Counted from the stretch's first letter, positions 7,966 through 30,994 are shown. The stretch: DNA of 30,994 nt from Cyanophora paradoxa CCMP329 (GCA_004431415.1 QPMI01000505.1:1-30994), one strand, 5' to 3'. Translations and numbers: made by a program. The notes: generated by a model from the sequence alone, not told the origin.

Positions 7966-8359
7966 TCATGATGTCTTGCACGCGCCGATCGATGCGAACG
8001 GCCCCGCGGCCGTATGCGCTCTTGTAAGCCGCCGCCGCCACCTTCCGAGCGCGCGAAACGTGCGCGCGCACGCTGTCCAGCCTGCTGTCGACGCCCCATG
8101 GCACAACAAGGGGAAATATTAATTATCTGAGCGTGGGACAGCATTTCTAACGATATATACACATCTACATTTCAATCGCTCCAAATCTGGTATAAGCACT
8201 GCGGCATCAGCATCGCATCGGACACGGATCGATTTAGCATCAAGTATGGTCTGAAAAGCGGCTTCGCAGAGTCTCAGAGTCTCATGAATACTAGGGAGAA
8301 ACACTGCAATATATATAATAGGACGCTTGAAAAAATCAGCGTTGTGTAGTCGACTGTGA

Positions 8360-9460
8360 CTAAGTTTGCTTAAGCTTTACTAAAGCGAAGTTTGGAAACA
8401 AGAGCTGGCAGCGAATCCAGTCCAAATACTTCCAGGTGGCAGCCTTGAGAAGCTGCTGGACGTCCACGGGTACGGGCTGGGGAGAAGCCGGGGGGGGGGG
8501 GGGGGGGGGGGCGGGGGCGCTCATGATCACGACTAGTACTGGGAGCTGGTGGGCCGCTGGCGGGGGCGGGGCCGGGCGGGAAGCCTGCGCCGTGCTGGCC
8601 ACGGGCGTGCTCGCCCATGGGGGGTACGGCTGTCCGGGCGCACCGCGCCGTAGCCGGCGCCCTCCGTCGGCTCCCTGCCGGCCGCCTGCGGCGCGCCCGG
8701 GGGCGGGCCGAAGGGCGCTGGGGGGATCCAGGGGGCAGGCCCCCCAGGGCCCGGCAGCGGGCGGGGGGCCTCGAGGGCGTGGCTCCTGCGGCCCCAGGCG
8801 TCGGCCTCGGCGGGGGGCCACTGGCCGCCGGCGGATGCGGGGGCCTGGAGGGAGATCATGGAGGGGGGCGGCAGGGGCGGCCCGTGCGCCGCCTCCCGCT
8901 CGATCCCGAGGCGCTGCTGCGCGTACCCGTACCCGTACCCGTGCCCCGCCTGCGCCTGCGCGCCGTACGCGTACGCCGCGTGCGCGTGCGCGTGGCGCTC
9001 GTCCTGGGGCTGGGGCCCCGGCGCCTGCGCCGCCGCGTGCGCGCCGTACGCGTGGTGCACCGCCGGCTGCAGCCGCTGCAGGGGCTGCCCGTTCGCCCCC
9101 GTTCCTGCGCGTGGGCCCCCGCAGAGCGCTCGCCCTGCTTCTGCTTCTGCTTCTGCTGCTGCTGCTGCGGCCGCCGCTGCGGGGGAGGGCGCTGCTGCGG
9201 CTTGCGGCGGCTCGCGGGAGCCGGCCGCTCCTCGTCGCCGCTGCCGCCGTCGTCGTCGCTGGAGGGCGGCGTCAGTGGGGCGCCGGGGGCGGCGGCGGGG
9301 CGGGGCGGGCCCGTCGAGCGCGGCGAGGGAGGGGAGGCCGCCCTGCCCCTCGGGCCCGTCCATGCCGCCGAGCAGCGCCGACGACTGCGCGATGTGCCGC
9401 CGCGCGTTCGCCAGCAGCTCCGGCGCGTCTGCACCCGCCCCGTCACCCCCCGCCCCGGCA
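8360..9460 (-). CDS. Low-complexity Ala/Gly/Pro/Gln/His-rich coding-like segment; either the 3' part of the RWP-RK gene or a separate gene
   Basis: Long open frames with protein-like text (ELLANARRHIAQSSALLGG; HAHAHAAYAYGAQAQAGHGYGYGYAQQ; PVDVQQLLKAATWKYLDWIR). They are broken by apparent frameshifts and a 22-G run at 8490-8511. Exon structure unresolved. Confidence 0.35.
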
Positions 9461-9708
9461 CGCGAGCGCAAGCCCCTGGAAATGGAAGGGGAGAGGGAAT
9501 GGAGCACCCGCGACCCTGAAAATGGAAGGAAAAAAGGAAACGGAAGGCGGGGGGCGCCGGGGCGGTGGTGCAGAATTCTGCAGAGGAGGCCAGGAATGGC
9601 GGGCAAAGGCCTAGGCCTAGGGGGCTGTGGAACGTGTACCGGCGTCTTTGCCGCTGTTGGGGGGTTGGGTTGGCAATGCATGGGGTTGGGGCGGGCCGGG
9701 GGAGCAAG

Positions 9709-11328
9709 CTAGTCCCCGAAAACGAATCGGGCGGCGCCACCTCTGCCCCCGCGGAACCCCCCGCGGGAGGGGTCCGCGAGGACAGAGGTGAGCGCCTCCT
9801 GCAGCGCCTCCAGCACCCCCCGCAGCTCATCGGACTGCCGCGCCCGCCCGCCCCGTAAGTGTTGCCTGCGGCGCCGGCCGGGGCCGGATCCCGGAGCGGC
9901 GGGGCGGGGCGGCGTGGGGAGGCGCACGAGGCGGGCGAGGCCGGCGGCGACGTGGCCGCCGGGGCGCTGGCCGGCCTGCGCCGCCTGCACGCGCTCCAGC
10001 GCGAGCTGCGCCGCCGACTCCCACCGCTTCAGCCCCGCGATCTTGCGCTGCGGCCTGCGCGCGCGCCCCGCCCCGGCCGGCCCGCGTCGCCTCTAGCCCG
10101 GTTGCGCAGGTGGCGGGGCGAGAGGGCGGGGGCGGACCAGCGGGGAGGCCGAGGGCGCGGCAGGCGGACTTGAGGGTGGAGACGGAGACGGAGAGGGCCT
10201 GCGCCGCCTCCACGATCGGCAGCGCGAAGAGCTGCGTCCGCTCGATCGAGCCCGGCCAGCGTCCGCGCTTCCCCTCCCCCGCCCCGGACTCGCTCAGGAA
10301 GGAGAGCAGCTGCGCCGAGAGCGTGTTCTCCCGCGACGCCGGCACCAGCGCCCTCCGCTGCCGCCCGCTCGGCCCGCCGCGCGCGGCGAGGCGGGGCGGG
10401 CGGGCGGGGCGGCCCACCGGCGCGTGCGGCTGGCCCCCGCCGCCCGGCTCGCGGTCGTCGAGGCGGGGCCGCTTGGGCCGGCCTGCTCCTCGAAGCCCGG
10501 ACGGCGGTCTCCGGAGGCTGCTCCCGAGCCCGGGGCGGCGTAGTAGGAGCCGGCGGCGTCCCGCGCGTGGCTGTAGTGCGAGACCAAGGCGCCGCCGCCG
10601 GCCGACGTGGCGGCGGGGATGGTGTACGCCGAGTGGGCCCCGCCGCCCGCCCCCTGCCACGCGGGGGCCACCCGTACCCCGTTCCGCCCGCCCGCCGCCC
10701 ACGGCCCGCCGTGCGGCGCCGCGGGGCCGCCGTGAGGGCCATAGGGGGCCCCGTAGCCTGCGGTGGAGCCGTGGCCTGCGGTGGCGCCCTGGGGCCCGTC
10801 GGGGCCCTCGGGCGGCCGCGGCGCGAACGGGTCTCGCCACTGCGAGCCGCTCCCGCCGTGCCCCTCTCCGGGCCCTTGCCCGCCAAAGCCGGTGGGGCCC
10901 CAGGGCGCGCCGCCCGAGCCCGAGGGGGCCGCGCTGGGGTGAAGGAACATGGAATGGGCGGAGACGTTGCCGTACGAGGGCCCGCCGGCAGTGGCGCCCT
11001 GCCCGCTGTTGCCGCCGCTGCCGCCGCCGGCAGCGCTACCACCGTATGCCGGCTGGGTGCCGTTTGGCGGGCCCCCGTACGCGCTTGCCGCGCCGCTGGC
11101 AAAACCGGAAGGCCCCGAGGCGTGGGGCTCCACTGCTCCGCTCGATGCGCCGGCGCCCAAACCGCCCGAGCCTGTTCGCCCAGAATCGATTCCTCTCTCG
11201 CGTCGAGCGGCGAGTGCGTCGAAAAGAAAAGGCGCACGGTCGGAGCCTCGTGGTTCCGAGGTCCCGGGGCCCGACGTGCTCGGATAGCCGCCCCAGCCAT
11301 AGCTGGGGAGCATCGCCGACATCCGCAT
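9709..11328 (-). CDS. RWP-RK domain transcription factor (NIN/RKD/MID superfamily); ends uncertain, two apparent 1-bp frameshifts
   Basis: RTQLFALPIVEAAQALSVSVSTLKSACRALGLP(R)W|PQRKIAGLKR spans intron 10055-10137 and is followed by a helical segment SDELRGVLEALQEALTSVLADP. The N-terminus is Gly/Pro/Ala-rich with an NLS-like KRPRL. Continuity needs one extra base in each of the G runs at ~10142-10145 and ~10475-10477. Confidence 0.8.
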
Positions 11329-12424
11329 CTGAAATGGAGCCGGCTGGCTGGTGGATGCCTCAGAGCCAGCGTCCCGCTCGTCTTTGTACCTAGGCCTATC
11401 ACCGTGGCCCCACGCGTCTTCGTATCCTGCGCACGCACTCAGCGACACCAAGACACGTTGAGGAGCAGATGCTCATTCGATCAGCAGCGCGCCGGTCGGA
11501 GACAGCTGTCTCGGATACTCGCCGGATCCGGACGCACCTGCAGAGCTCATCGGAACGAAGTCACCGAGTTCTGGAGGAGCTCCGGTCGATCATTATCGAG
11601 AACTGAGCTCGAGCACGCTCGCCTCCACTCGGCCGGCGCGCCTGCGGGTCCGACAGTCCCGAGACTGGACCCAAGTCCCAACCCGCTGCTCCGCCAGAAT
11701 ATGCCGTACCCCAGAATCGAATTTCGTTTTTACGCTTTTTATCAAGTGTTGTTGTAATTTGTTGCTTTTAGCTTCGTCTGGGTACAAATTTTGTGCTGGG
11801 GCTGCGACCGCGAGAGAGCGCTAGCTATACTGTTCAGTAGCTAGATCTAGATCCGATGATCTAGCCTAGTAGAATCTACTAGGCTATATCTAGAGGCTGG
11901 GCCGCGATGTCCCTGGCGGCAGTAGCAGCGCCGCGGCGGCTATCATAGTATATATATAGCTAGCCGCGGATGCATGTGTGCATTGTGCATATATTTGCAA
12001 GCGCACATATATCATGATATGCGATTTGCATGATTTCAAGTTAAATGACGCCGGCGCACGCGCGCGCGCGCGCAGCCGGCGCCGGCGCCCGGTCGCGGCC
12101 GCGGTGCCCGCAGCTGCATGCAGCTAGAGCGCTATTTAAATTTTTATAGCAAAAAATTGATCATGATATTCCAAGTTTTAGCTTGTCGTAGACTCGTAAC
12201 GACGTACGTACGCGTAGTCTCGATCTCGCAGATCGTATATCTCGAAACTTGCCAAGTTGGGGCGAAAGTACTTGTAAAAAAACTAAATTTCAATAGGGGT
12301 TAACGTTAACGTTGTACATGCATGTGCCAGTGGTGTAAGGTAAAATTCATGATCAGGTTAACGTAAGTACTAACGTACGTGCCTCTCCGGATCCCGATGA
12401 TGGACCGGATCCTAGGTTTAACTG

Positions 12425-12743
12425 CCGTAGAACACAATATTAAGGTCTGTACAGACTGTACTTTATTATGTCGTCCCGAAATTATGTCGCCTCGGACCGA
12501 GTCGATCGGACGTACGGGACAAAACGACATAATTTGCATATTGGGGACGTCATAATTCGGGCTCGCTCAGCCACCCCATCCAGTACCCCCCAATTTTACC
12601 GCCCCACACAAGCCTGAAAATTTCATGCCGACCGGACATGCAGAAGTTCGGGGACGTCATATTTCGCATATGCATAGAGAAGGCTCGGGTTTTAAAACGA
12701 CATAAATTTGCATGACATATATAATATTAATTGTGCTCTACGG
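12425..12743. mobile_element. MITE-like non-autonomous element, Tc1/mariner-pogo (Tc2-like CCGTA ends), degenerate
   Basis: Left end CCGTAGAACACAAT and right end ATTGTGCTCTACGG form a 13/14 inverted match. TA follows the right end and TG precedes the left. Internal ATTATGTCGT motifs (12466, 12481) are mirrored by ACGACATAA/GACGTCATA motifs (~12524, 12546, 12653, 12697). No ORF. Confidence 0.6.
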
Positions 12744-13265
12744 TACTATATATAAAATAGTCTGGTGACTCTGGTCTGGTATACGTGCTGATCATGCATG
12801 AGTAACAGTAAGTATGCAGGTTGAGCTCTGCATCCGCAATCCTATCCTAGTATATATATACATACATATCATTATTTACTACATTTCATCAACAATTCGT
12901 AGTATTCGTAGTATACGTATTTCGAATTCGGCTTCGAATTCGTAGTATTTCGTACCGAATCGTACGCGTCTGCCGGCGCGCTTATGATTCACATCCAAGT
13001 TCCAACACTAGTACTGCCACTAGTACTGGCCCTACTGGGCCCTGGCGCCGGCTGGCGGATGAAAAGCGGTGCCCATTAGCCAGATCAGCAACTAATCCGC
13101 GCCCGGAGGCCCGACTCGCGGCCCCGGACTCCCGGAGTCGCGGGCCGTCGCGGGCCTCGCGGCCCGACTCCCGAGCCGTTCGAGCCTTCGAGGTTCTGGA
13201 ATTATTAAGAACGTCAATTTCCGAATTTCGTCCTCAAACTTTTACTAGTCTTTTAGGCTCAAACT

Positions 13266-13295
13266 TAGAGCCTTCTCATCGCTTCGGCGACCGCC
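13266..13295 (+). repeat. Left inverted repeat of the unit
   Basis: TAGAGCCTTCTCAT (13266-13279) is the exact reverse complement of 18102-18115, and the match extends imperfectly to ~29 bp. Confidence 0.8.
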
Positions 13296-13930
13296 AGGCC
13301 CTGGTACCGAGTACTCCGGGGCAATCGCTAGCGCGAACCGTCGGACGACGGACGCGGCGCCGGCGATCGCTTAAAAAAGGCCCCGGCCCGATCCGAGCCC
13401 ATGGCCGGCGGGCATAGTGAACATAGTGCCAAAATGTCGCCCCGAAATCACGGTTTTTAGAAGGATCGGAAGAAAGCGCGCCCAAGCAGGACCGAGGGGC
13501 GGTTCCGGCACGTACCTACTGACTCAGAGCTGCTTGCGCTGGGCCCGCCGGCCGACGCCATGAGACCCGGTTGAGAGCTCGAATCCCTGCGCGCCGCCTT
13601 ACAGCGGCCGAGGATGGGCGAAGGCTGCAGAATTCGATGATGTGCACCTCGGACAAGCGAAAGCGCGTAGCTAGCGCGCCGCCGGCGCCGCGGGTGAGCC
13701 GATGAAGCCAGCGATGTGTACTCCTCGCGTGCGCGGGCGCGGCGACGTCGCCTGCCGGGCGGGCGTGGCGCCGCGGGCTGAGCACGGCGCGCGCACGGCA
13801 GTGCACATGCGCATCGGGCGGTGTTGACGTTCGCGCGCTGCAGCTGCATGCATGGCGCCGGCCGGGCGCGCGGAAGTTGGTTTTTTTTGCTATTCGTCCC
13901 CCTGCGCTTCTCCCCCCCTTCATTCCCCCG

Positions 13931-13954
13931 AAGTTAGCCACCGGTGGCTAACTT
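13931..13954. other. Perfect 24-bp palindrome AAGTTAGCCACCGGTGGCTAACTT (also at 18936, 23943, 28943)
   Basis: Equals its own reverse complement. It lies ~90 bp downstream of the orphan gene stop and is unchanged in all four copies. Confidence 0.9.
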
Positions 13955-14044
13955 GCGATCGAAGGGTACAGGGATCACCCTCCTGAAATTGATCTCTTAC
14001 AAAACCAACGCTGTCGTAGAACCCTACACTATCTGCAAGCGGAA

Positions 14045-17000
14045 TCAGGCAATCTGCAGTCCTACGAAAGCCTTGCACCGCTGCAGGAGCCCTTTTGCCT
14101 GCTCTTCGTTCGCGAAGATGTCAGGATGCCCGCGCGGGGCGCGCGGAACCACTCTGTGGAGGCGGCCACAAATGGTGCGCATGCTGTGGGATCGCGCAGG
14201 TGGTGGCCACTGCACACCACCCGGCCCAGCGCGGGAAAACAGGACCTCCAGGACGCGGTCGACCCGGCACTTCGCTTTGAAAGTAGACCCAGCGGTCGTG
14301 CGCGCGTTCATCTGGTATGCTGGATCAGAGAGCTCGACGATCGCATGCACCACCCTGCAACCAGTGTCATGATCGGCACGCTGCGCAACGACACCGTTAC
14401 AGATAGAAAAAGGAAAGGAAAGGAAGAGAAAGTAAGAAAGAGAAGGGGGAAGAAAGACAGAATGAAAGAAAAGAAAGGAAAGGACGCACGGCCAGTGGTC
14501 CCACTCCAGGTTCTTGAAGCTCTTCAGGATGTGCATGATCGCCTCCGGCGTAACGTTCACGTCGTCGAGCCGTCGGACTTCGCATGCGACGGTGCATGCA
14601 CCTAGGCCTTGCCGGGCCGTGCACGCCAGGTCTCCGTCGTTGGGTGGGAGTCGGGCAAGAACCTCCACGTATGCGCGCACTGCAGGGCTCGAGGCTCTCG
14701 CCCCGCGCACCGCAGTTGCGATTTCCGCAACGCTGTCGCGCACTGAACGATAGCCGTTCTCCTCCCGCGTCATTGCGGGAAACATGTGCAGCTTCGCCTT
14801 CAGGGTGGTGCTCATCTGGTTAAGGAAGCGGTTCTCGGTGTTCGCGACTCTGCGACGAGAAATCAGAAAAGACCGCTGACAGAGGACATGACGGGCGGGG
14901 GTACACATACCGTCTGTAGAGCAAGGAGAGGAGGGGTATTGGAATGGGGCGCTCGGCTGTTCCCATCCACACGGCCTTGTTCCGTCGCGTGTACGGTGGG
15001 CGGACGTACAGCTCGACCTCTTGCTCCACCTCCTCCATAATCCCCTGCGCATTTGGCTGCGAATTGCGTGAGCCGCCGCGACGACGATGGCGCCAGGAAC
15101 GTGCTCACCTCCTGTACTTTGTCGACCCTCACCTTGAACGCGGTCGCCCCAGTTCGTCCACCTCCGGATACTCCTCTCCGGAGCTGTGGGATCGGTCCCC
15201 GCGGTTCAAGAGGCGGTGATTGGGGACGTCCGACTTTGCACCGATCTGCTCCAGCGCCGCTGTGACTTGCTTCAGCGCTGGCATGCTGTTGTGTGATACA
15301 CGGCCTGTCCCGTACTTCTCCTGCGTCGAAGTTCAGTTCATGTACGTACCCCCCCACGCTCCCTTACCCCCGGGCGCACCACTATCTCGGGCTTGGAGCG
15401 TATCCTTGTGAAGGCCTCGTTCTCCGGGTCCTCGCGATAGACAGCCGCCGGATTCGCGAGCGCCTCGTGGCACGCCTGCCAAGAGACCGAAAGGCAGGCA
15501 CGGTTCGGTTGTGGGTTAATCGCTAGGGGTATCGAAGATTCTGTACCTTCAGCGGCCTCGGTGCTGGGTGGGGGCTGCTCCGGGGTCCTCCCCGGCATCC
15601 CGCCTTGCCTCCCACTGAGCTCGGGCCCTCCTTGCATCTCCGTGTTCATCCTCGTCGATTGCCAGTGCGAGATCGACGAGGCCTTGAAGATGAGCTGGTT
15701 GATGGTTGTTGCCCACCGTCGGAATCGAGCGATGCGGACAAGGCTTGAGAAGAAGATGCCAATGGAGATGCTGCTCGCTGGCCCGGCAAGCAGGCGCAGG
15801 ACCTCCATCCCACTCGTGCGGATGCGCTGCAAAGCCTTTTCGTCGATTGGTCTGCCGGCGCCGCTGTTGACGTTCTTGTTTCCTGTTCCCGACTGGCACT
15901 TCTCCACCAGCCTCTTGACTTCTTCGAACTCCGAGAGACCCGCCCGCGCCTTTCTCTTACGCCCCTTCTCTCTTGGCATCTCTTGCGCCAACATGTCCTC
16001 CACAGCCGCTGCCGTAAGCTCGATACATGCATGCAACCTGTGACAGGAAGATCAGATCAGAAACGATGGCGTACCCCCCCCCCCCCCCGCCCCCCCCGCG
16101 CACCAAAGTTGGAGTGACTCGCCTTCGCTTGTCTGCTGTTGCGCTGACTGAAGTAAGCGGATCAGACTTCGGAGCTGCTCCTTTGCTTCTTCTGTTGTGC
16201 CTAGATTTAAAGCTTGCTGGCTGAGCCCGAGAGTTGCCTGCATGCGTGGCAGATTGACTTGGGCCTGACCATTCTTAACCTGAGCGTGAAGTTGAGCTCG
16301 ACGAAGTACAAGATTTAGATGAAGAATGTCACCTCCAGGAATGCATCAGCAAGAGACTGAGCTCGAGCTGGCTCGCGCTCCATATCTGCCTCTGCAGGTC
16401 GCCAGGCAAGAAGTTGTGTGAGCACCGCTGCAGCTGACCGGATATCGCCATCGACAGGAGCTGCAATGCAGTTAGACCACAACGAAGCGCCACTTAGCAG
16501 TCATTCAAATGCAACTCACAGTAGAAATCAAGCGACTCGCCGCCTGACTGACCAAAGAAGTACAGCTCGATCCATTGGGAGAGGTACAGCTTCGATTGTA
16601 CAGCATACGAGCGGCTATCTGCACGAGGCGCTGCGGGTTCCTGGAACTCCAGAGCCAAGATTACCTGCACACAAAGACACAATCAGCAGATGCAGCAAGC
16701 AGCAAGCATGTCAAACTTGCCAGGTCTATTTCACGCAATCTCCTCTCACGGGCGTAGATCTTGTTCTTGTAGAACCACTTGGCTCGCTCCTTTAGCCAAT
16801 CGTGATGCTTGTCTCGCATTTCCTTGTCCACTTCGAATTGCCCGTGCTCGCCTACAGAACCAAGGCCAAGAAATGCGCACTGCATCGGCATTCAGTACAT
16901 TCACACGATGGAAGAACAATAGAAGCTCACATCAATGTCAATGAGTTCCTCGTAATGCGAAGAACTCTTTGTCTCGTCACCGTTGCCGTCGTTTACATTG

Positions 17001-17935
17001 CGTGCAGCCTCTTGCTGGCGTGTCGACTCGAGCGCCACCTAAGATCATATTCAGAACAGAATCGCAAGATAAGTTGCAGTAAGAACTGCACCGAGCTCAA
17101 GAATTGCTTCAGAGCATTGAGCTCGTCCAGGGTCCGGTCCCGGGCCGGTTCGCCGCGAAACCGCACTCGGCAAGACCTAGCCTGAGCTTGAGCCGCCTGT
17201 GCTGTTATCTACACGAGCATGAGCTGACATCATAGGTACTCTGACAAATCCGTGCACCAGATCGAGCCAATCAACACAACTTTGAAATATGTCGCCTCGC
17301 TGTTCTCCATTCGTTTCCACGAACAAGTCCCGCAGCGCTTGCAAGGCTTGAGGTGGGGGCAAGTTGATGAGAACGCCCTCTACGTAGTGCAGCATGGGGT
17401 CCAAAGCTGCACAACATATGAGAGATGCAGCAGTTAGGCCTCCGGGCTCGTGCACCAACATCGTGGCGGCGGTGTACACTGGGTCCGGGGCCGGGGGAGG
17501 GGCAGGGCCGGGGGAGGGGCAGGGCCGGGGGAGGGGCAGGGCCGGGGAGGGGCGGGGTCGGGGGAGATGGAGGGCGGGGCCCGGGGATGGGCGGGGTCGG
17601 GGGAGGGGCGGGGCCGGGGGAGGGGCGGGTCGGGGGAGATGGAGGGGCGGGGCCCGGGGATGGGCGGGGTCGGGGGAGGGGCGGGGCCGGGGGGAGGGGC
17701 GGGCAGTACCCCTCTCCCCGCGTCGCACCGGCCCCGCCGCGCCGGTCAGCGTGGGGACAAGCTCAAGGCTGGAGCGAGCGCCGCCGCTTGCCGTGCTGCC
17801 CCGAGGCCGCCCCCGAGGCCACCACCCGCCGTGCGGCCCGCCAGAAGGGGATTGGGAGATGAGCTGGAGGTCCACTCCATCTCTTCCTCCCCAAAGAGAG
17901 TGCTCCTGGGGTCGACATGCTGCGGAGTCGGGCAT
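14045..17935 (-). CDS. Multi-exon (~13-15 exons) hypothetical protein of roughly 1000 aa, copy 1; start uncertain
   Basis: Short introns, e.g. 17209-17257, 17039-17091, 16880-16930 and 16665-16720 (GC-AG), join the ORF fragments in frame: ...SCVDWLDL|ITAQAAQAQARSCRVRF...LKQFLSS|VALESTRQQ...ELIDID|CAFLGLG...RLREIDL|VILALEFQ...; NLS-like EKGRKRKAR; ...NLEWDHWP|VPIMTLVAG...; ends KAFVGLQIA. Remaining frameshifts fall in homopolymers and differ between copies. Confidence 0.7.
17487..17703 (+). repeat. G-rich minisatellite (GGGGGAGGGGCRGGGYC-type; also ~22496-22713 and ~27497-27721)
   Basis: Tandem G-run units of ~17 bp with higher-order duplication. It reads as a Pro-rich tract on the gene strand and has G-quadruplex potential. 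Confidence 0.85.
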
Positions 17936-18086
17936 AAGACACCGAAAAGCAGCGATCGCTTGGCCAATGAGAAGGCGGTGGACGTCAAGCCCGCGGCGAC
18001 CGTTAGAACTGAGAACCCAGAAGCGATCGCCGGCCCAGCAGCTCTTTGTTAGAGGTCGGACTCGCTGGGTATGGCGCCGAACACAA

Positions 18087-18115
18087 AGCGATCGCCGAGC
18101 AATGAGAAGGCTCTA
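18087..18115 (-). repeat. Right (subterminal) inverted repeat of the unit
   Basis: AGCGATCGCCGAGCAATGAGAAGGCTCTA lies 151 bp inside the unit end. A partial direct copy is at 17951-17976. Confidence 0.8.
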
Positions 18116-18266
18116 TGCGCGGGGCAGATCTAGCGATCCAATTGAATAGGGAATCTCTATGCGAGCAAGCTCGCAGCGCTACGGGAGGCGGGCACGCACT
18201 GCAGGCGTTGGCGTTGGCTGGTGCGACGAACTTGAAGCAGCTCCTGTGCAAGCGATCGCCGGTCAG

Positions 18267-21200
18267 AGAGCCTTCTCATCGCTTCGGCGACCGCCAGGCC
18301 CTGGTACCGAGTACTCCGGGGCAATCGCTAGCGCGAACCGTCGGACGACGGACGCGGCGCCGGCGATCGCTTAAAAAAGGCCCCGGCCCGATCCGAGCCC
18401 ATGGCCGGCGGGCATAGTGAACATAGTGCCAAAATGTCGCCCCGAAATCACGGTTTTTAGAAGGATCGGAAGAAAGCGCGCCCAAGCAGGACCGAGGGGC
18501 GGTTCCGGCACGTACCTACTGACTCAGAGCTGCTTGCGCTGGGCCCGCCGGCCGACGCCATGAGACCCGGTTGAGAGCTCGAATCCCTGCGCGCCGCCTT
18601 ACAGCGGCCGAGGATGGGGCGAAGGCTGCAGAATTCGATGATGTGCACCTCGGACAAGCGAAAGCGCGTAGCTAGCGCGCCGCCGGCGCCGCGGGTGAGC
18701 CGATGAAGCCAGCGATGTGTACTCCTCGCGTGCGCGGGCGCGGCGACGTCGCCTGCCGGGCGGGCGTGGCGCCGCGGGGCTGAGCACGGCGCGCGCACGG
18801 CAGTGCACATGCGCATCGGGCGGTGTTGACGTTCGCGCGCTGCAGCTGCATGCATGGCGCCGGCCGGGCGCGCGGAAGTTGGTTTTTTTTGCTATTCGTC
18901 CCCCCTGCGCTTCTCCCCCCCCTTCATTCCCCCCGAAGTTAGCCACCGGTGGCTAACTTGCGATCGAAGGGTACAGGGATCACCCTCCTGAAATTGATCT
19001 CTTACAAAACCAACGCTGTCGTAGAACCCTACACTATCTGCAAGCGGAATCAGGCAATCTGCAGTCCTACGAAAGCCTTGCACCGCTGCAGGAGCCCTTT
19101 TGCCTGCTCTTCGTTCGCGAAGATGTCAGGATGCCCCGCGCGGGCGCGCGGAACCACTCTGTGGAGGCGGCCACAAATGGTGCGCATGCTGTGGGATCGC
19201 GCAGGTGGTGGCCACTACACACCACCCGGCCCAGCGCGGGGAAAACAGGACCTCCAGGACGCGGTCGACCCGGCACTTCGCTTTGAAAGTAGACCCAGCG
19301 GTCGTGCGCGCGTTCATCTGGTATGCTGGATCAGAGAGCTCGACGATCGCATGCACCACCCCTGCAACCAGTGTCATGATCGGCACGCTGCGCAACGACA
19401 CCGTTACAGATAGAAAAAGGAAAGGAAAGGAAGAGAAAGTAAGAAAGAGAAGGGGGAAGAAAGACAGAATGAAAGAAAAGAAAGGAAAGGACGCACGGCC
19501 AGTGGTCCCACTCCAGGTTCTTGAAGCTCTTCAGGATGTGCATGATCGCCTCCGGCGTAACGTTCACGTCGTCGAGCCGTCGGACTTCGCATGCGACGGT
19601 GCATGCACCTAGGCCTTGCCGGGCCGTGCACGCCAGGTCTCCGTCGTTGGGTGGGAGTCGGGCAAGAACCTCCACGTATGCGCGCACTGCAGGGCTCGAG
19701 GCTCTCGCCCCGCGCACCGCAGTTGCGATTTCCGCAACGCTGTCGCGCACTGAACGATAGCCGTTCTCCTCCCGCGTCATTGCGGGAAACATGTGCAGCT
19801 TCGCCTTCAGGGTGGTGCTCATCTGGTTAAGGAAGCGGTTCTCGGTGTTCGCGACTCTGCGACGAGAAATCAGAAAAGACCGCTGACAGAGGACATGACG
19901 GGCGGGGTACACATACCGTCTGTAGAGCAAGGAGAGGAGGGGTATTGGAATGGGGCGCTCGGCTGTTCCCATCCACACGGCCTTGTTCCGTCGCGTGTAC
20001 GGTGGGCGGACGTACAGCTCGACCTCTTGCTCCACCTCCTCCATAATCCCCTGCGCATTTGGCTGCGAATTGCGTGAGCCGCCGCGACGACGATGGCGCC
20101 AGGAACGTGCTCACCTCCTGTACTTTGTCGACCCTCACCTTGAACGCGGTCGCCCCAGTTCGTCCACCTCCGGATACTCCTCTCCGGAGCTGTGGGATCG
20201 GTCCCCGCGGTTCAAGAGGCGGTGATTGGGGACGTCCGACTTTGCACCGATCTGCTCCAGCGCCGCTGTGACTTGCTTCAGCGCTGGCATGCTGTTGTGT
20301 GATACACGGCCTGTCCCGTACTTCTCCTGCGTCGAAGTTCAGTTCATGTACGTACCCCCCCCACGCTCCCTTACCCCCCGGGCGCACCACTATCTCGGGC
20401 TTGGAGCGTATCCTTGTGAAGGCCTCGTTCTCCGGGTCCTCGCGATAGACAGCCGCCGGATTCGCGAGCGCCTCGTGGCACGCCTGCCAAGAGACCGAAA
20501 GGCAGGCACGGTTCGGTTGTGGGTTAATCGCTAGGGGGTATCGAAGATTCTGTACCTTCAGCGGCCTCGGTGCTGGTGGGGGGCTGCTCCGGGGTCCTCC
20601 CGGCATCCCGCCTTGCCTCCCACTGAGCTCGGGCCCTCCTTGCATCTCCGTGTTCATCCTCGTCGATTGCCAGTGCGAGATCGACGAGGCCCTTGAAGAT
20701 GAGCTGGTTGATGGTTGTTGCCCACCGTCGGAATCGAGCGATGCGGACAAGGCTTGAGAAGAAGATGCCAATGGAGATGCTGCTCGCTGGCCCGGCAAGC
20801 AGGCGCAGGACCTCCATCCCACTCGTGCGGATGCGCTGCAAAGCCTTTTCGTCGATTGGTCTGCCGGCGCCGCTGTTGACGTTCTTGTTTCCTGTTCCCG
20901 ACTGGCACTTCTCCACCAGCCTCTTGACTTCTTCGAACTCCGAGAGACCCGCCCGCGCCTTTCTCTTACGCCCCTTCTCTCTTGGCATCTCTTGCGCCAA
21001 CATGTCCTCCACAGCCGCTGCCGTAAGCTCGATACATGCATGCAACCTGTGACAGGAAGATCAGATCAGAAACGATGGCGTACCCCCCCCCCCCCCCCGC
21101 CGCCCCCGCGCACCAAAGTTGGAGTGACTCGCCTTCGCTTGTCTGCTGTTGCGCTGACTGAAGTAAGCGGATCAGACTTCGGAGCTGCTCCTTTGCTTCT

Positions 21201-23275
21201 TCTGTTGTGCCTAGATTTAAAGCTTGCTGGCTGAGCCCGAGAGTTGCCTGCATGCGTGGCAGATTGACTTGGGCCTGACCATTCTTAACCTGAGCGTGAA
21301 GTTGAGCTCGACGAAGTACAAGATTTAGATGAAGAATGTCACCTCCAGGAATGCATCAGCAAGAGACTGAGCTCGAGCTGGCTCGCGCTCCATATCTGCC
21401 TCTGCAGGTCGCCAGGCAAGAAGTTGTGTGAGCACCGCTGCAGCTGACCGGATATCGCCATCGACAGGAGCTGCAATGCAGTTAGACCACAACGAAGCGC
21501 CACTTAGCAGTCATTCAAATGCAACTCACAGTAGAAATCAAGCGACTCGCCGCCTGACTGACCAAAGAAGTACAGCTCGATCCATTGGGAGAGGTACAGC
21601 TTCGATTGTACAGCATACGAGCGGCTATCTGCACGAGGCGCTGCGGGTTCCTGGAACTCCAGAGCCAAGATTACCTGCACACAAAGACACAATCAGCAGA
21701 TGCAGCAAGCAGCAAGCATGTCAAACTTGCCAGGTCTATTTCACGCAATCTCCTCTCACGGGCGTAGATCTTGTTCTTGTAGAACCACTTGGCTCGCTCC
21801 TTTAGCCAATCGTGATGCTTGTCTCGCATTTCCTTGTCCACTTCGAATTGCCCGTGCTCGCCTACAGAACCAAGGCCAAGAAATGCGCACTGCATCGGCA
21901 TTCAGTACATTCACACGATGGAAGAACAATAGAAGCTCACATCAATGTCAATGAGTTCCTCGTAATGCGAAGAACTCTTTGTCTCGTCACCGTTGCCGTC
22001 GTTTACATTGCGTGCAGCCTCTTGCTGGCGTGTCGACTCGAGCGCCACCTAAGATCATATTCAGAACAGAATCGCAAGATAAGTTGCAGTAAGAACTGCA
22101 CCGAGCTCAAGAATTGCTTCAGAGCATTGAGCTCGTCCAGGGTCCGGTCCCGGGCCGGTTCGCCGCGAAACCGCACTCGGCAAGACCTAGCCTGAGCTTG
22201 AGCCGCCTGTGCTGTTATCTACACGAGCATGAGCTGACATCATAGGTACTCTGACAAATCCGTGCACCAGATCGAGCCAATCAACACAACTTTGAAATAT
22301 GTCGCCTCGCTGTTCTCCATTCGTTTCCACGAACAAGTCCCGCAGCGCTTGCAAGGCTTGAGGTGGGGGCAAGTTGATGAGAACGCCCTCTACGTAGTGC
22401 AGCATGGGTCCAAAGCTGCACAACATATGAGAGATGCAGCAGTTAGGCCTCCGGGCTCGTGCACCAACATCGTGGCGGCGGTGTACACTGGGTCCGGGGC
22501 CGGGGGAGGGGCAGGGCCGGGGGAGGGCAGGGCCGGGGGAGGGGCAGGGCCGGGGGAGGGCGGGGTCGGGGGGAGATGGAGGGCGGGGCCCGGGGATGGG
22601 CGGGGTCGGGGGAGGGGCGGGGCCGGGGGAGGGGCGGGGTCGGGGGAGATGGAGGGGCGGGGCCCGGGGGATGGGCGGGGTCGGGGGAGGGCGGGGCCGG
22701 GGGAGGGGCGGGCAGTACCCCTCTCCCCGCGTCGCACCGGCCCCCGCCGCGCCGGTCAGCGTGGGGACAAGCTCAAGGCTGGAGCGAGCGCCGCCGCTTG
22801 CCGTGCTGCCCCGAGGCCGCCCCCGAGGCCACCACCCGCCGTGCGGCCCGCCAGAAGGGGATTGGGAGATGAGCTGGAGGTCCACTCCATCTCTTCCTCC
22901 CCAAAGAGAGTGCTCCTGGGGTCGACATGCTGCGGAGTCGGGCATAAGACACCGAAAAGCAGCGATCGCTTGGCCAATGAGAAGGCGGTGGACGTCAAGC
23001 CCGCGGCGACCGTTAGAACTGAGAACCCAGAAGCGATCGCCGGCCCAGCAGCTCTTTGTTAGAGGTCGGACTCGCTGGGTATGGCGCCGAACACAAAGCG
23101 ATCGCCGAGCAATGAGAAGGCTCTATGCGCGGGCAGATCTAGCGATCCAATTGAATAGGGAATCTCTATGCGAGCAAGCTCGCAGCGCTACGGGAGGCGG
23201 GCACGCACTGCAGGCGTTGGCGTTGGCTGGTGCGACGAACTTGAAGCAGCTCCTGTGCAAGCGATCGCCGGTCAG
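18267..23275 (-). mobile_element. Unit 2 of the 5-kb array
   Basis: Near-identical to unit 1. Confidence 0.5.
19050..22945 (-). CDS. Same hypothetical multi-exon gene, copy 2
   Basis: Exon and intron sequences essentially identical to copy 1. Confidence 0.7.
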
Positions 23276-26200
23276 AGAGCCTTCTCATCGCTTCGGCGAC
23301 CGCCAGGCCCTGGTACCGAGTACTCCGGGGCAATCGCTAGCGCGAACCGTCGGACGACGGACGCGGCGCCGGCGATCGCTTAAAAAAGGCCCCGGCCCGA
23401 TCCGAGCCCATGGCCGGCGGGCATAGTGAACATAGTGCCAAAATGTCGCCCCGAAATCACGGTTTTTAGAAGGATCGGAAGAAAGCGCGCCCAAGCAGGA
23501 CCGAGGGGCGGTTCCGGCACGTACCTACTGACTCAGAGCTGCTTGCGCTGGGCCCGCCGGCCGACGCCATGAGACCCGGTTGAGAGCTCGAATCCCTGCG
23601 CGCCGCCTTACAGCGGCCGAGGATGGGGCGAAGGCTGCAGAATTCGATGATGTGCACCTCGGACAAGCGAAAGCGCGTAGCTAGCGCGCCGCCGGCGCCG
23701 CGGGTGAGCCGATGAAGCCAGCGATGTGTACTCCTCGCGTGCGCGGGCGCGGCGACGTCGCCTGCCGGGCGGGCGTGGCGCCGCGGGGCTGAGCACGGCG
23801 CGCGCACGGCAGTGCACATGCGCATCGGGCGGTGTTGACGTTCGCGCGCTGCAGCTGCATGCATGGCGCCGGCCGGGCGCGCGGAAGTTGGTTTTTTTTG
23901 CTATTCGTCCCCCCTGCGCTTCTCCCCCCCTTCATTCCCCCGAAGTTAGCCACCGGTGGCTAACTTGCGATCGAAGGGTACAGGGATCACCCTCCTGAAA
24001 TTGATCTCTTACAAAACCAACGCTGTCGTAGAACCCTACACTATCTGCAAGCGGAATCAGGCAATCTGCAGTCCTACGAAAGCCTTGCACCGCTGCAGGA
24101 GCCCTTTTGCCTGCTCTTCGTTCGCGAAGATGTCAGGATGCCCGCGCGGGGCGCGCGAACCACTCTGTGGAGGCGGCCACAAATGGTGCGCATGCTGTGG
24201 GATCGCGCAGGTGGTGGCCACTACACACCACCCGGCCCAGCGCGGGGAAAACAGGACCTCCAGGACGCGGTCGACCCGGCACTTCGCTTTGAAAGTAGAC
24301 CCAGCGGTCGTGCGCGCGTTCATCTGGTATGCTGGATCAGAGAGCTCGACGATCGCATGCACCACCCCTGCAACCAGTGTCATGATCGGCACGCTGCGCA
24401 ACGACACCGTTACAGATAGAAAAAGGAAAGGAAAGGAAGAGAAAGTAAGAAAGAGAAGGGGGAAGAAAGACAGAATGAAAGAAAAGAAAGGAAAGGACGC
24501 ACGGCCAGTGGTCCCACTCCAGGTTCTTGAAGCTCTTCAGGATGTGCATGATCGCCTCCGGCGTAACGTTCACGTCGTCGAGCCGTCGGACTTCGCATGC
24601 GACGGTGCATGCACCTAGGCCTTGCCGGGCCGTGCACGCCAGGTCTCCGTCGTTGGGTGGGAGTCGGGCAAGAACCTCCACGTATGCGCGCACTGCAGGG
24701 CTCGAGGCTCTCGCCCCGCGCACCGCAGTTGCGATTTCCGCAACGCTGTCGCGCACTGAACGATAGCCGTTCTCCTCCCGCGTCATTGCGGGAAACATGT
24801 GCAGCTTCGCCTTCAGGGTGGTGCTCATCTGGTTAAGGAAGCGGTTCTCGGTGTTCGCGACTCTGCGACGAGAAATCAGAAAAGACCGCTGACAGAGGAC
24901 ATGACGGGCGGGGTACACATACCGTCTGTAGAGCAAGGAGAGGAGGGGTATTGGAATGGGGCGCTCGGCTGTTCCCATCCACACGGCCTTGTTCCGTCGC
25001 GTGTACGGTGGGCGGACGTACAGCTCGACCTCTTGCTCCACCTCCTCCATAATCCCCTGCGCATTTGGCTGCGAATTGCGTGAGCCGCCGCGACGACGAT
25101 GGCGCCAGGAACGTGCTCACCTCCTGTACTTTGTCGACCCTCACCTTGAACGCGGTCGCCCCCAGTTCGTCCACCTCCGGATACTCCTCTCCGGAGCTGT
25201 GGGATCGGTCCCCGCGGTTCAAGAGGCGGTGATTGGGGACGTCCGACTTTGCACCGATCTGCTCCAGCGCCGCTGTGACTTGCTTCAGCGCTGGCATGCT
25301 GTTGTGTGATACACGGCCTGTCCCGTACTTCTCCTGCGTCGAAGTTCAGTTCATGTACGTACCCCCCCCACGCTCCCTTACCCCCCGGGCGCACCACTAT
25401 CTCGGGCTTGGAGCGTATCCTTGTGAAGGCCTCGTTCTCCGGGTCCTCGCGATAGACAGCCGCCGGATTCGCGAGCGCCTCGTGGCACGCCTGCCAAGAG
25501 ACCGAAAGGCAGGCACGGTTCGGTTGTGGGTTAATCGCTAGGGGTATCGAAGATTCTGTACCTTCAGCGGCCTCGGTGCTGGGTGGGGGCTGCTCCGGGT
25601 CCTCCCGGCATCCCGCCTTGCCTCCCACTGAGCTCGGGCCCTCCTTGCATCTCCGTGTTCATCCTCGTCGATTGCCAGTGCGAGATCGACGAGGCCCTTG
25701 AAGATGAGCTGGTTGATGGTTGTTGCCCACCGTCGGAATCGAGCGATGCGGACAAGGCTTGAGAAGAAGATGCCAATGGAGATGCTGCTCGCTGGCCCGG
25801 CAAGCAGGCGCAGGACCTCCATCCCACTCGTGCGGATGCGCTGCAAAGCCTTTTCGTCGATTGGTCTGCCGGCGCCGCTGTTGACGTTCTTGTTTCCTGT
25901 TCCCGACTGGCACTTCTCCACCAGCCTCTTGACTTCTTCGAACTCCGAGAGACCCGCCCGCGCCTTTCTCTTACGCCCCTTCTCTCTTGGCATCTCTTGC
26001 GCCAACATGTCCTCCACAGCCGCTGCCGTAAGCTCGATACATGCATGCAACCTGTGACAGGAAGATCAGATCAGAAACGATGGCGTACCCCCCCCCCCCC
26101 CGCGGCCCCCCGCGCACCAAAGTTGGAGTGACTCGCCTTCGCTTGTCTGCTGTTGCGCTGACTGAAGTAAGCGGATCAGACTTCGGAGCTGCTCCTTTGC

Positions 26201-28283
26201 TTCTTCTGTTGTGCCTAGATTTAAAGCTTGCTGGCTGAGCCCGAGAGTTGCCTGCATGCGTGGCAGATTGACTTGGGCCTGACCATTCTTAACCTGAGCG
26301 TGAAGTTGAGCTCGACGAAGTACAAGATTAGATGAAGAATGTCACCTCCAGGAATGCATCAGCAAGAGACTGAGCTCGAGCTGGCTCGCGCTCCATATCT
26401 GCCTCTGCAGGTCGCCAGGCAAGAAGTTGTGTGAGCACCGCTGCAGCTGACCGGATATCGCCATCGACAGGAGCTGCAATGCAGTTAGACCACAACGAAG
26501 CGCCACTTAGCAGTCATTCAAATGCAACTCACAGTAGAAATCAAGCGACTCGCCGCCTGACTGACCAAAGAAGTACAGCTCGATCCATTGGAGAGGTACA
26601 GCTTCGATTGTACAGCATACGAGCGGCTATCTGCACGAGGCGCTGCGGGTTCCTGGAACTCCAGAGCCAAGATTACCTGCACACAAAGACACAATCAGCA
26701 GATGCAGCAAGCAGCAAGCATGTCAAACTTGCCAGGTCTATTTCACGCAATCTCCTCTCACGGGCGTAGATCTTGTTCTTGTAGAACCACTTGGCTCGCT
26801 CCTTTAGCCAATCGTGATGCTTGTCTCGCATTTCCTTGTCCACTTCGAATTGCCCGTGCTCGCCTACAGAACCAAGGCCAAGAAATGCGCACTGCATCGG
26901 CATTCAGTACATTCACACGATGGAAGAACAATAGAAGCTCACATCAATGTCAATGAGTTCCTCGTAATGCGAAGAACTCTTTGTCTCGTCACCGTTGCCG
27001 TCGTTTACATTGCGTGCAGCCTCTTGCTGGCGTGTCGACTCGAGCGCCACCTAAGATCATATTCAGAACAGAATCGCAAGATAAGTTGCAGTAAGAACTG
27101 CACCGAGCTCAAGAATTGCTTCAGAGCATTGAGCTCGTCCAGGGTCCGGTCCCGGGCCGGTTCGCCGCGAAACCGCACTCGGCAAGACCTAGCCTGAGCT
27201 TGAGCCGCCTGTGCTGTTATCTACACGAGCATGAGCTGACATCATAGGTACTCTGACAAATCCGTGCACCAGATCGAGCCAATCAACACAACTTTGAAAT
27301 ATGTCGCCTCGCTGTTCTCCATTCGTTTCCACGAACAAGTCCCGCAGCGCTTGCAAGGCTTGAGGTGGGGGCAAGTTGATGAGAACGCCCTCTACGTAGT
27401 GCAGCATGGGGTCCAAAGCTGCACAACATATGAGAGATGCAGCAGTTAGGCCTCCGGGCTCGTGCACCAACATCGTGGCGCGGTGTACACTGGGTCGGGG
27501 CCGGGGGGAGGGCAGGGCCGGGGGAGGGCAGGGCCGGGGGAGGGCAGGGCCGGGGGGAGGGGCGGGGTCGGGGGAGATGGAGGGGCGGGGCCCGGGGGAT
27601 GGGCGGGGTCGGGGGGAGGGGCGGGGCCGGGGGGAGGGGCGGGGTCGGGGGGAGATGGAGGGGCGGGGCCCGGGGGATGGGCGGGGTCGGGGGGAGGGGC
27701 GGGGCCGGGGGGAGGGGCGGGCAGTACCCCTCTCCCCCGCGTCGCACCGGCCCCCGCCGCGCCGGTCAGCGTGGGGACAAGCTCAAGGCTGGAGCGAGCG
27801 CCGCCGCTTGCCGTGCTGCCCCCGAGGCCGCCCCCGAGGCCACCACCCGCCGTGCGGCCCGCCAGAAGGGATTGGGAGATGAGCTGGAGGTCCACTCCAT
27901 CTCTTCCTCCCCAAAGAGAGTGCTCCTGGGTCGACATGCTGCGGAGTCGGGCATAAGACACCGAAAAGCAGCGATCGCTTGGCCAATGAGAAGGCGGTGG
28001 ACGTCAAGCCGCGGCGACCGTTAGAACTGAGAACCCAGAAGCGATCGCCGGCCCAGCAGCTCTTTGTTAGAGGTCGGACTCGCTGGGTATGGCGCCGAAC
28101 ACAAAGCGATCGCCGAGCAATGAGAAGGCTCTATGCGCGGGGCAGATCTAGCGATCCAATTGAATAGGGAATCTCTATGCGAGCAAGCTCGCAGCGCTAC
28201 GGGAGGCGGGCACGCACTGCAGGCGTTGGCGTTGGCTGGTGCGACGAACTTGAAGCAGCTCCTGTGCAAGCGATCGCCGTCAG
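23276..28283 (-). mobile_element. Unit 3 of the 5-kb array
   Basis: Near-identical to unit 1. Confidence 0.5.
24057..27954 (-). CDS. Same hypothetical multi-exon gene, copy 3
   Basis: Exon and intron sequences essentially identical to copy 1. Confidence 0.7.
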
Positions 28284-30994
28284 AGAGCCTTCTCATCGCT
28301 TCGGCGACCGCCAGGCCCTGGTACCGAGTACTCCGGGGCAATCGCTAGCGCGAACCGTCGGACGACGGACGCGGCGCCGCGATCGCTTAAAAAAGGCCCC
28401 GCCCGATCCGAGCCCATGGCCGGCGGCATAGTGAACATAGTGCCAAAAGTCGCCCCGAAATCACGGTTTTTAGAAGGATCGGAAGAAAGCGCGCCCAAGC
28501 AGGACCGAGGGCGGTTCCGGCACGTACCTACTGACTCAGAGCTGCTTGCGCTGGCCCGCCGGCCGACGCCATGAGACCCGGTTGAGAGCTCGAATCCTGC
28601 GCGCCGCCTTACACGGCCGAGGATGGGGCGAAGGCTGCAGAATTCGATGATGTGCACCTCGGACAAGCGAAAAGCGCGTAGCTAGCGCGCCGCCGGCGCC
28701 GCGGGTGAGCCGATGAAGCCAGCGATGTGTACTCCTCGCGTGCGCGGGCGCGGCGACGTCGCCTGCCGGGCGGCGTGGCGCCGCGGGGCTGAGCACGGCG
28801 CGCGCACGGCAGTGCACATGCGCATCGGGCGGTGTTGACGTTCGCGCGCTGCAGCTGCATGCATGGCGCCGGCCGGGGCGCGCGGAAGTTGGTTTTTTTG
28901 CTATTCGTCCCCCCTGCGCTTCTCCCCCCCTTCATTCCCCCGAAGTTAGCCACCGGTGGCTAACTTGCGATCGAAGGGTACAGGGATCACCCTCCTGAAA
29001 TTGATCTCTTACAAAACAACGCTGTCGTAGAACCCTACACTATCTTGCAAGCGGAATCAGGCAATCTGCAGTCCTACGAAAGCCTTGCACCGCTGCAGGA
29101 GCCCTTTTGCCTGCTCTTCGTCGCGAAGATGTCAGGATGCCCCGCGCGGGGCGCGCGGAACCACTCTGTGGAGGCGGCCACAAATGGTGCGCATGCTGTG
29201 GATCGCGCAGGTGGTGGCCACTACACACCACCCGGCCCCAGCGCGGGGAAAACAGACCTCCAGGACGCGGTCGACCCGGCACTTCGCTTTGAAAGTAGAC
29301 CCAGCGGTCGTGCGCGCGTTCATCTGGTATGCTGGATCAGAGAGCTCGACGATCGCATGCACCACCCTGCAACCAGTGTCATGATCGGCACGCTGCGCAA
29401 CGACACCGTTACAGATAGAAAAGGAAAGGAAGGAAGAAAAGTAAGAAGAGAGGGGGAAAGACAGAATGAAAGAAAGAAAGGAAAGGACGCACGGCCAGTG
29501 GTCCACTCCAGGTTCTTGAAGCTCTTCAGATGTGCATGATCGCTCCGGCGTAACGTTCACGTCGTCGAGCCGTCGGACTTCGCATGCCGACGGTGCATGC
29601 ACTAGGCCTTGCCGGCCGTGCACGCCAGGTCTCCGTCGTTGGTGGGAGTCGGGCAAGAACCTCACGTATGCGCGCACTGCAGGGCTCGAGCTTCGCCCGC
29701 GCACCGCAGTTTGCGATTTCCGCAACGCTGTCGCGCACTGAACGATAGCCTTCTCCTCCCGCGTCATTGCGGAAACATGTGCAGCTTCGCCTTCAGGGTG
29801 GTGCTCATCTGGTTAAGGAAGCGGTTCTCGTGTTCGCGACTCTGCGACGAGATCAGAAAAGACCGCTGACAGAGGACATGACGGGCGGGGGTACACATAC
29901 CGTCTGTAGAGCAAGGAGAGGAGGGGTATTGGAATGGGGCGCTCGGCTGTTCCCATCCACACGGCCTTGTTCCGTCGCGTGTACGGTGGGCGGACGTACA
30001 GCACCTCTTGCTCCACCTCCTCCATAATCCCCTGCGCATTTGGCTGCGAATTGCGTGAGCCGCCGCGACGACGATGGGCCAGGAACGTGCTCACCTCCTG
30101 TACTTTGTCGACCTCACCTTGAACGCGGTCGCCCCCAGTTCGTCCACCTCCGGATACTCCTCTCCGGAGCTGTGGGATCGTCCCCGCGGTTCAAAGAGCG
30201 GTGATTGGGGACGTCCGACTTTGCACCGATCTGCTCCAGCGCCGCTGTGACTGCTTCAGCGCTGGCATGCTGTTGTGTGATACACGGCCTGTCCCGTACT
30301 TCTCCTGCGTCGAAGTTCAGTTCATGTACGTACCCCCCCCACGCTCCCTTACCCCCCGGGCGCACCACTATCTCGGGCTTGGAGCGTATCCTTGTGAAGG
30401 CCTCGTTCTCCGGGTCCTCGCGATAGACAGCCGCCGGATTCGCGAGCGCCTCGTGGCACGCCTGCCAAGAGACCGAAAGGCAGGCACGGTTCGGTTGTGG
30501 GTTAATCGCTAGGGGGTATCGAAGATTCTGTACCTTCAGCGGCCTCGGTGCTGGGTGGGGGCTGCTCCGGGGTCCTCCCCGGCATCCCGCCTTGCCTCCC
30601 ACTGAGCTCGGGCCCTCCTTGCATCTCCGTGTTCATCCTCGTCGATTGCCAGTGCGAGATCGACGAGGCCCTTGAAGATGAGCTGGTTGATGGTTGTTGC
30701 CCACCGTCGGAATCGAGCGATGCGGACAAGGCTTGAGAAGAAGATGCCAATGGAGATGCTGCTCGCTGGCCCGGCAAGCAGGCGCAGGACCTCCATCCCA
30801 CTCGTGCGGATGCGCTGCAAAGCCTTTTCGTCGATTGGTCTGCCGGCGCCGCTGTTGACGTTCTTGTTTCCTGTTCCCGACTGGCACTTCTCCACCAGCC
30901 TCTTGACTTCTTCGAACTCCGAGAGACCCGCCCGCGCCTTTCTCTTACGCCCCTTCTCTCTTGGCATCTCTTGCGCCAACATGTCCTCCACAGC
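28284..30994 (-). mobile_element. Unit 4 of the 5-kb array (truncated by the window, many indels)
   Basis: Matches roughly the first 2.7 kb of unit 1 with many single-base deletions. Confidence 0.45.
29057..30994 (-). CDS. Same hypothetical gene, copy 4 (3' half only in the window)
   Basis: Matches the 3' exons of copy 1. Many indels, probably consensus errors. Confidence 0.55.

Follow-up and report, generated by a model that had tools for sequence, protein, structure and literature searches.

Tandem 5-kb units with an orphan spliced gene and a nested inverted-repeat cluster in Cyanophora paradoxa: macrosatellite or mobile element?

In the glaucophyte alga Cyanophora paradoxa CCMP329, a stretch of 30,994 nucleotides (GCA_004431415.1, QPMI01000505.1:1-30994; hereafter, the window) contains a head-to-tail array of a ~5005-bp unit, which occupies positions 13267-30994 on the plus strand in at least 3.5 copies. 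Each unit carries one spliced gene, and the array begins at the arm of an inverted repeat (IR). A preliminary description of the window, made from the sequence alone, had proposed a candidate new type of mobile element that was recently amplified through a circular or rolling-circle intermediate. The question raised by this locus is therefore whether such units move by themselves, or whether they form a chromosomal tandem repeat that has been amplified in place. We tentatively favor the view that the array is a chromosomal gene-bearing macrosatellite of C. paradoxa, to which we assign a probability slightly short of even.

A head-to-tail array and its junction cluster

A comparison of the window with itself by BLAST placed the unit copies at 13267-18266, 18267-23275, 23276-28283 and 28284-30994 on the plus strand, the fourth being cut by the window end. 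Positions 13267-26020 and 18267-30994 were 99.0% identical, with 12 mismatches and 113 gap openings. When the four units were aligned with MAFFT, the only true substitution was G14212 versus A19217, A24223 and A29223, the other mismatches being artefacts beside insertions or deletions (indels); this change is synonymous (Cys, TGC to TGT). All three joins between units were identical. The array is thus real, chromosomal, and very recently amplified or homogenized. These results agree with the preliminary description, in which a head-to-tail array of nearly identical units had been reported, with G14212 as the only substitution noticed; the self-comparison (99.0%) and the unit starts at 13267, 18267, 23276 and 28284 support the former and the four-unit alignment the latter. 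Its claim of recent amplification is supported in the wider form 'recently amplified or homogenized', as the units differ by one synonymous substitution in 17.7 kb.

The alignment of the four units contained 98 indel columns, 81 of which were in a homopolymer context, and the indel error rate in the array region was ~0.5%. Because the C. paradoxa assembly was produced from PacBio RSII reads using Canu v1.0, followed by Quiver and Illumina majority correction (PMC6704402), these indels most likely represent long-read errors left behind in a repeat that resists polishing, and not decay of the copies. Unit 4 is ~30 bp shorter in a GA-rich tract (29423-29455, versus 14411-14451, 19418-19458 and 24424-24464) and contains more frame breaks; the shortening could be a real length variation or could reflect a consensus of lower quality close to the end of the contig.

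The terminal IR arm AGAGCCTTCTCAT constitutes the first bases of every unit (18267-18279 on the plus strand in unit 2; also starting at 13267, 23276 and 28284), and the inner arm ATGAGAAGGCTCT (18102-18114, plus strand; also starting at 23112 and 28120) ends 152 bp before the unit end. The perfect IR that is repeated in the units is 13 bp long and extends imperfectly to ~25 nt at 84%. The preliminary description had placed the start of the array exactly at a 14-bp IR with a partner 151 bp inside the other end; the position of the start was confirmed, but the IR measures 13 bp, since T13266 belongs to the flank, and the distance is 152 bp. The right end of the whole unit reads ...GCCGGTCAG, and the end at the inner arm reads ...GGCTCT(A). 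A second perfect 13-bp IR pair consists of AAGCGATCGCCGG at 18250-18262 and its counterpart at 18360-18372, with one arm 4 nt from the right end of the unit. At each terminus of the unit there is a 13-bp motif that recurs, inverted, in a subterminal position at the opposite end.

Both IR arms lie inside a 420-bp junction cluster, delimited by motif search at 17952-18372, which recurs at 22962-23381 and 27971-28388 and is represented by its right part only at 13267-13372. In this cluster, five AAGCGATCGC(C/T) palindrome-like sites per unit (at 17952, 18023, 18088, 18252 and 18363) and three AATGAGAAGGC sites per unit (at 17967 and 18102 on the plus strand and at 18270 on the minus strand) form nested IRs, and no AAGCGATCGC(C/T) site was found in the 13-kb flank. 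The window contains 16 GCGATCGC sites, compared with 2.3 expected, and all 16 are located at unit junctions. We found no account of the 5-kb unit or of GCGATCGC clusters in the literature on Cyanophora. The 152-bp stretch between the inner arm and the unit end carries a GCGATCGC site of the unit type, and it is therefore unlikely to be co-amplified host DNA. Perfect 13-bp IRs occurred at a mean of 1.1 in the Markov-shuffled unit, so that one such repeat in 5 kb of GC-rich sequence is unremarkable; the IR arms are part of a larger nested motif cluster, which might equally well be a regulatory region or an origin.

Homology to the array starts at A13267. The preceding T13266 belongs to the flank, and the internal junctions carry G at this place (...GGTCAG|AGAGCC...). 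The left flank ends with ...AAACTT, and when its last 40 bases were set in register against the unit end, 6 of the 40 agreed. The local alignment score did not exceed those of shuffled sequences, and no homology to the unit was detected anywhere in the 13 kb of flank (1-13266).

The gene, its product and its relatives

Every unit contains one gene on the minus strand. When the database model P0013 (478 amino acids, aa) was mapped on unit 2, it spanned 19050-21003 with seven exons (21003-20556, 20483-20388, 20326-20115, 20062-19916, 19855-19718, 19549-19496 and 19386-19053, followed by the stop codon TGA), whose ends are good to ~2 nt where a codon is split. The introns are 52-168 nt long and have GT-AG ends. 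GC contents at the three codon positions (0.63, 0.46 and 0.76) show the pattern of real coding sequence. In these and the following comparisons, exons were searched singly, full-length proteins were compared via database models, and a four-unit majority consensus was used only for mapping open reading frames (ORFs). Relative to P0013, each full copy in the window contains ~4-6 frameshifts at different places, and the truncated fourth copy contains more. Because the frameshift positions differ for each copy, the database holds many differently truncated models; the truncated or chimeric models P0001-P0016 for one unit come from homopolymer indels, which calls for caution when members of the family are counted.

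The 478-aa model probably lacks at least one upstream exon, and the real product is probably ~800 aa, because a candidate exon at 21522-21632 on the minus strand, 520-630 bp upstream of the model start codon, is homologous to residues 162-198 of a distant relative (P0033, 821 aa), and because further minus-strand ORFs upstream, to ~22070, show a coding-type excess of GC at third over second codon positions (GC3 > GC2). A word search with the upstream ORF at 22190-23122 (minus strand) returned no gene models. The preliminary description had predicted one large protein encoded by an intron-containing gene, which is what we found, at a probable length of ~800 aa.

A word search with one exon-sized ORF matched gene models of C. 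paradoxa only (EukProt EP00741). Near-identical models were present on eight contigs, namely tig00021096 (four models), tig00020920 (three adjacent), tig00000403 (two), tig00000821, tig00021494, tig00021098, tig00000145 and tig00020807, and a subfamily of 57% identity was present on eight further contigs, often as adjacent models. Tandem models of the unit on other contigs include g15915-17 and g18120-28. The most distant member, tig00000881_g5231, is represented by two isoforms (P0022 and P0033, 799 and 821 aa) and is collinear with the family at ~25% identity; no second, closely similar gene model appeared among the matches, and a word search with P0033 returned only itself. In this single occurrence it behaves as an ordinary host gene would. 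A HMMER search against 1.84 billion representative proteins gave 11 matches, which consisted of Cyanophora models, three Logan fragments (46-51% identity, on contigs of at most 3.3 kb), one spurious repeat protein, and P0022/P0033. Judged from these matches, the family is multi-copy and appears restricted to glaucophytes, with members in C. paradoxa and the three Logan fragments. The gene is real: it has seven exons separated by GT-AG introns and the codon-position GC pattern described above, and it is matched by collinear paralogs (57% and 25%) and by Logan fragments at 46-51%. Its high GC3 and many spliceosomal introns suit a long-resident gene.

A ~110-bp GC-rich segment located 3΄ of the gene (18675-18785, minus strand, and at the same place in the other units) showed a different pattern of conservation. 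When translated, it shared 81-96% identity with the final exon in models of the 57% subfamily (P0008 and P0024), a level of conservation between the subfamilies far above that of the coding exons (57%). From this comparison the segment appears to be non-coding or mis-modelled.

The two models on tig00000403, which correspond to adjacent units, share a private H192D change that is absent from all four copies in the window, and therefore at least two distinct array segments exist. According to the preliminary description, a single locus with no dispersed copies, together with a far boundary unrelated to the IR and its motif cluster, would have indicated an ordinary tandem gene duplication. The family was found on many contigs, as expected for dispersed copies, but fragmentation of long arrays during assembly could explain this observation, and the multi-contig distribution may represent a few such arrays.

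We searched for known enzymes among the products of the unit and its relatives. Pfam gave no family match for 10 ORFs of the unit, for eight models and ORFs, or for P0033, and integrase and recombinase families, including tyrosine recombinases, gave no match at E values up to 1. No match for the family protein was found in PHROGs, nothing below an E value of 1.6 was found among PDB sequences with either a single protein or a profile, and a search of the ESM Atlas with P0033 was blank. Neither a transposase, nor a reverse transcriptase (RT), a Rep/helicase or a recombinase was detected by Pfam, PHROGs, PDB sequences, the HMMER search or the ESM Atlas. The preliminary description had likewise recognized no DDE, RT, Rep/helicase or tyrosine-recombinase motif, and the Pfam, PDB and HMMER searches bear this out. 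Two weak leads from the ESM Atlas for P0013, DUF6698 and DUF6532 (Basidiomycota), shared few features with it, had no Pfam support, and were rejected. Searches of IMG/VR and the JGI metagenomes by protein pattern, and one scan by unit-end DNA, revealed no relatives; PLSDB (mostly bacterial) and phage collections gave no match. No homology to plasmid Rep, FLP or partition proteins was found in the Pfam, HMMER and PLSDB searches.

Family members share the conserved blocks RLLAGP...F(S/T)SL, YVxPPYTxRN...RPIP...LYRR and VANTENR...LKAKLH.FPAM.REE. A C-terminal motif, SPxWG...C...H.R.P..C, is common to all branches of the family and may bind zinc, and a basic run (KGRKRKAR) near the N-terminus of the model suggests nuclear localization. 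Two AlphaFold2 models built on shallow alignments had low confidence (predicted local distance difference test, pLDDT, of 45.6 and 41.6) and contained mainly helices, with one strand pair in the second; neither model gave any indication of a core of the RNase H-like, HUH or recombinase type. The protein is probably mostly helical and nuclear.

Origin of the array

The favored interpretation, a gene-bearing macrosatellite, can be outlined as follows. Each 5.0-kb unit, comprising the minus-strand spliced gene, a G-rich minisatellite and the 420-bp nested-IR motif cluster, would have been recently amplified, with unequal exchange between sister chromatids and gene conversion maintaining the identity of the copies. 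In this view, the motif cluster would be the binding region of a sequence-specific dimeric protein, possibly the product of the unit itself, and would serve as a promoter or an origin. Being rich in palindromes, the cluster might also have been the fragile break-and-join point when the array formed, and the start of the array at an IR arm would follow from this. The unit need not be able to move by itself. Coding macrosatellites are exemplified by the human D4Z4/DUX4 (3.3-kb units) and RS447/USP17 (4.7-kb units). The C. paradoxa array resembles these in that kb-sized units with one gene each are arranged head-to-tail in a chromosomal context, are kept near-identical by concerted evolution, and can occupy more than one locus; head-to-tail order, kb size, one gene per unit, near-identity and chromosomal context, which characterize macrosatellites or tandem gene arrays, were all observed in the window. 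It differs from them in its intron-rich orphan gene, its nested-IR junction cluster, its start exactly at an IR arm, and the amplification of two diverged subfamilies. The near-identity of the units, the unique gene-bearing flank of 13 kb, the real gene and the failure to find a mobilizing enzyme in our searches support the macrosatellite as a reasonable, if still provisional, account.

Several observations weigh against a macrosatellite or speak for the main rival, in which the unit would be an unclassified mobile DNA element, with ends marked by the nested cluster, for which a circular or rolling-circle process, or aberrant end-directed transposition, lays down head-to-tail copies. The array begins precisely at the outermost base of an IR arm, which ordinary duplication does not predict and which would occur by chance at ~0.4% (~20 arm ends per 5005 positions). 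The GC content of the unit (0.61) differs from that of the flank at 1-11700 (0.72), as the preliminary description had claimed for the unit and its host. The absence of GCGATCGC from the 13-kb host flank indicates that this is not a general promoter motif here, and the motifs are confined to the unit junction. The two subfamilies are each homogeneous and each occur on eight contigs, and spread between loci needs some mechanism; H192D in two adjacent units of tig00000403, with the two or more array segments that it implies, is in line with such spread. The doubly asymmetric terminal and subterminal motifs (AGAGCCTTCTCAT with 18102-18114, and AAGCGATCGCCGG at 18250-18262 with 18360-18372) and the ~110-bp non-coding segment, whose conservation between subfamilies far exceeds that of the gene, also speak for a mobile element. 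Its enzyme would be the orphan protein of the unit or a trans factor that recognizes the AAGCGATCGC and AATGAGAAGGC sites. However, the analysis brought no sign of transposition, circles or rolling-circle replication; no mobilizing enzyme was recognizable, the two AlphaFold2 models (pLDDT 42-46) being mainly helical; the window contains one boundary, with no target-site duplication (TSD), solo copy or second boundary visible in it; the spread over contigs may be fragmentation of a few long arrays; and IMG/VR and the JGI metagenomes yielded no relatives. We consider a mobile element possible but on the doubtful side, and a 'new mobile-element type' remains a hypothesis. The more specific proposal of an undescribed class of 5-kb single-gene elements, which would have AAGCGATCGC-type palindrome clusters, form arrays by a circular or rolling-circle route, and use a helix-rich novel protein or a trans factor, is unlikely.

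Assignment to known families of mobile elements fails on the enzyme, as far as the sequence searches can tell, for Helitron2/Helentron elements, for transposons with terminal inverted repeats (TIRs) and for tyrosine-recombinase elements. Helitrons are known to form tandem arrays and circular intermediates, and the unit resembles Helitron2/Helentron elements in its asymmetric IR, with the 5΄-terminal sequence recurring inverted inside the 3΄ end. However, 152 bp separate the inner IR from the end of the unit, the true 3΄ end of the array lying outside the window, whereas in the Helitron2-like elements of Fusarium (FoHeli) it lies ~20-40 bp from the 3΄ end (PMC5148889). In addition, no Rep (HUH)/superfamily 1 helicase was found, and an asymmetric terminal IR plus a hairpin would be a simpler arrangement than the motif cluster. 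Helitron2/Helentron elements insert into TT or TTTT|T without target duplication, and the flank visible here reads ...AAACTT. A canonical Helitron was ruled out, as TC...CTRR ends and Rep/Hel are lacking. The 13-bp perfect IR at the visible end and the repeated short motifs, which occur near the ends in either orientation, recall cut-and-paste TIR transposons; in contrast to these, the second arm lies 152 bp inside the unit end, no DDE or known transposase was found, no solo copies were seen, and no TSD is visible at the single boundary in the window. A TSD of the TA or TWA type was rejected, since only T13266 supports it and the internal junctions have G. The tyrosine-recombinase domain that marks Cryptons and related elements was not detected in Pfam (E values up to 1) or among PDB sequences.

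Two further origins were weighed. The array could derive from a small nuclear plasmid or episome, comparable to 2-micron of yeast or to Ddp2, that became integrated as a concatemer. In that case a 5.0-kb circle, carrying a single gene for maintenance or replication and an origin rich in IRs, would have recombined into the chromosome within its IR cluster; a single crossover of a multimeric circle gives a head-to-tail array that starts at one precise point of the unit. The layout of the Dictyostelium nuclear plasmid Ddp2 served for comparison. The unit size, the single large lineage-specific gene and the IR with its iteron-like cluster are consistent with this origin, and 2-micron and Ddp plasmids similarly have ~5-6 kb, few lineage-specific genes, and IRs linked with replication or recombination. 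They differ from the C. paradoxa unit, which forms a chromosomal array, has short IRs (13-25 bp) and spliceosomal introns, and shows no homology to them. Few natural nuclear plasmids have been described in eukaryotes, where they have probably escaped notice, and only two characterized families are named (PMC11962162). Such a plasmid would not usually have six or more spliceosomal introns or a GC3 bias like that of the host, and neither the search of 1.84 billion proteins for similarity to plasmid proteins nor the mostly bacterial PLSDB gave a match; we regard an episome as quite unlikely. Alternatively, Canu might have over-extended a lower- or single-copy sequence or a free circle, or might have joined it chimerically to the flank. 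The indel rate of ~0.5% is like that of poorly polished, low-coverage or multi-mapping sequence, and the window, which derives from RSII reads assembled with Canu v1.0, ends inside the array. Such an artefact is nevertheless very improbable, given that the three unit joins are identical, the flank join is clean, tandem models of the unit occur on several other contigs (g15915-17 and g18120-28), and both the minisatellite length and one substitution differ between copies.

If the array is a macrosatellite only, it provides a tidy case of an orphan gene that was recently amplified in a deep-branching alga, and it warns that gene models in repeats assembled from long reads can be frameshifted. 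If the unit is truly mobile or self-replicating, it would be a eukaryotic element or nuclear plasmid without a known enzyme, joining a very short list (PMC11962162), and would pair one protein with two defined DNA motifs (AAGCGATCGCTT and AATGAGAAGGC).

Other features of the flank and the unit

By composition, the host flank at 1-11700 is very GC-rich (0.72) nuclear DNA of C. paradoxa, and an AT-rich block (11701-13266, GC content 0.48) without homology to the unit lies directly left of the array. Short palindromes abound in this block of 1.5 kb, as do direct repeats, of which ...GACGTCATAATT... and ...ACGACATAATTTGCAT... are examples. In the GC-rich flank, Pfam identified an RWP-RK domain (E value 6e-8) in an ORF at 9827-10840 on the minus strand, and the other long ORFs there had no Pfam match. 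RWP-RK proteins are a family of plant and algal transcription factors. Rfam and tRNA scans of the whole window gave no matches.

Within the unit, a perfect 24-bp palindrome, AAGTTAGCCACCGGTGGCTAACTT, occurs once per unit ~100 nt 3΄ of the stop codon (18936-18959; also 13931-13954, 23943-23966 and 28943-28966) and may be a 3΄-end or terminator hairpin. The G-rich minisatellite, with periods of 17 and 73 bp, lies between the junction cluster and the 5΄ part of the gene (22495-22712; also 17486-17703 and 27492-27721). It is 218-230 bp long, with slight differences in length between units, and if translated on the gene strand it would give a proline-rich stretch.

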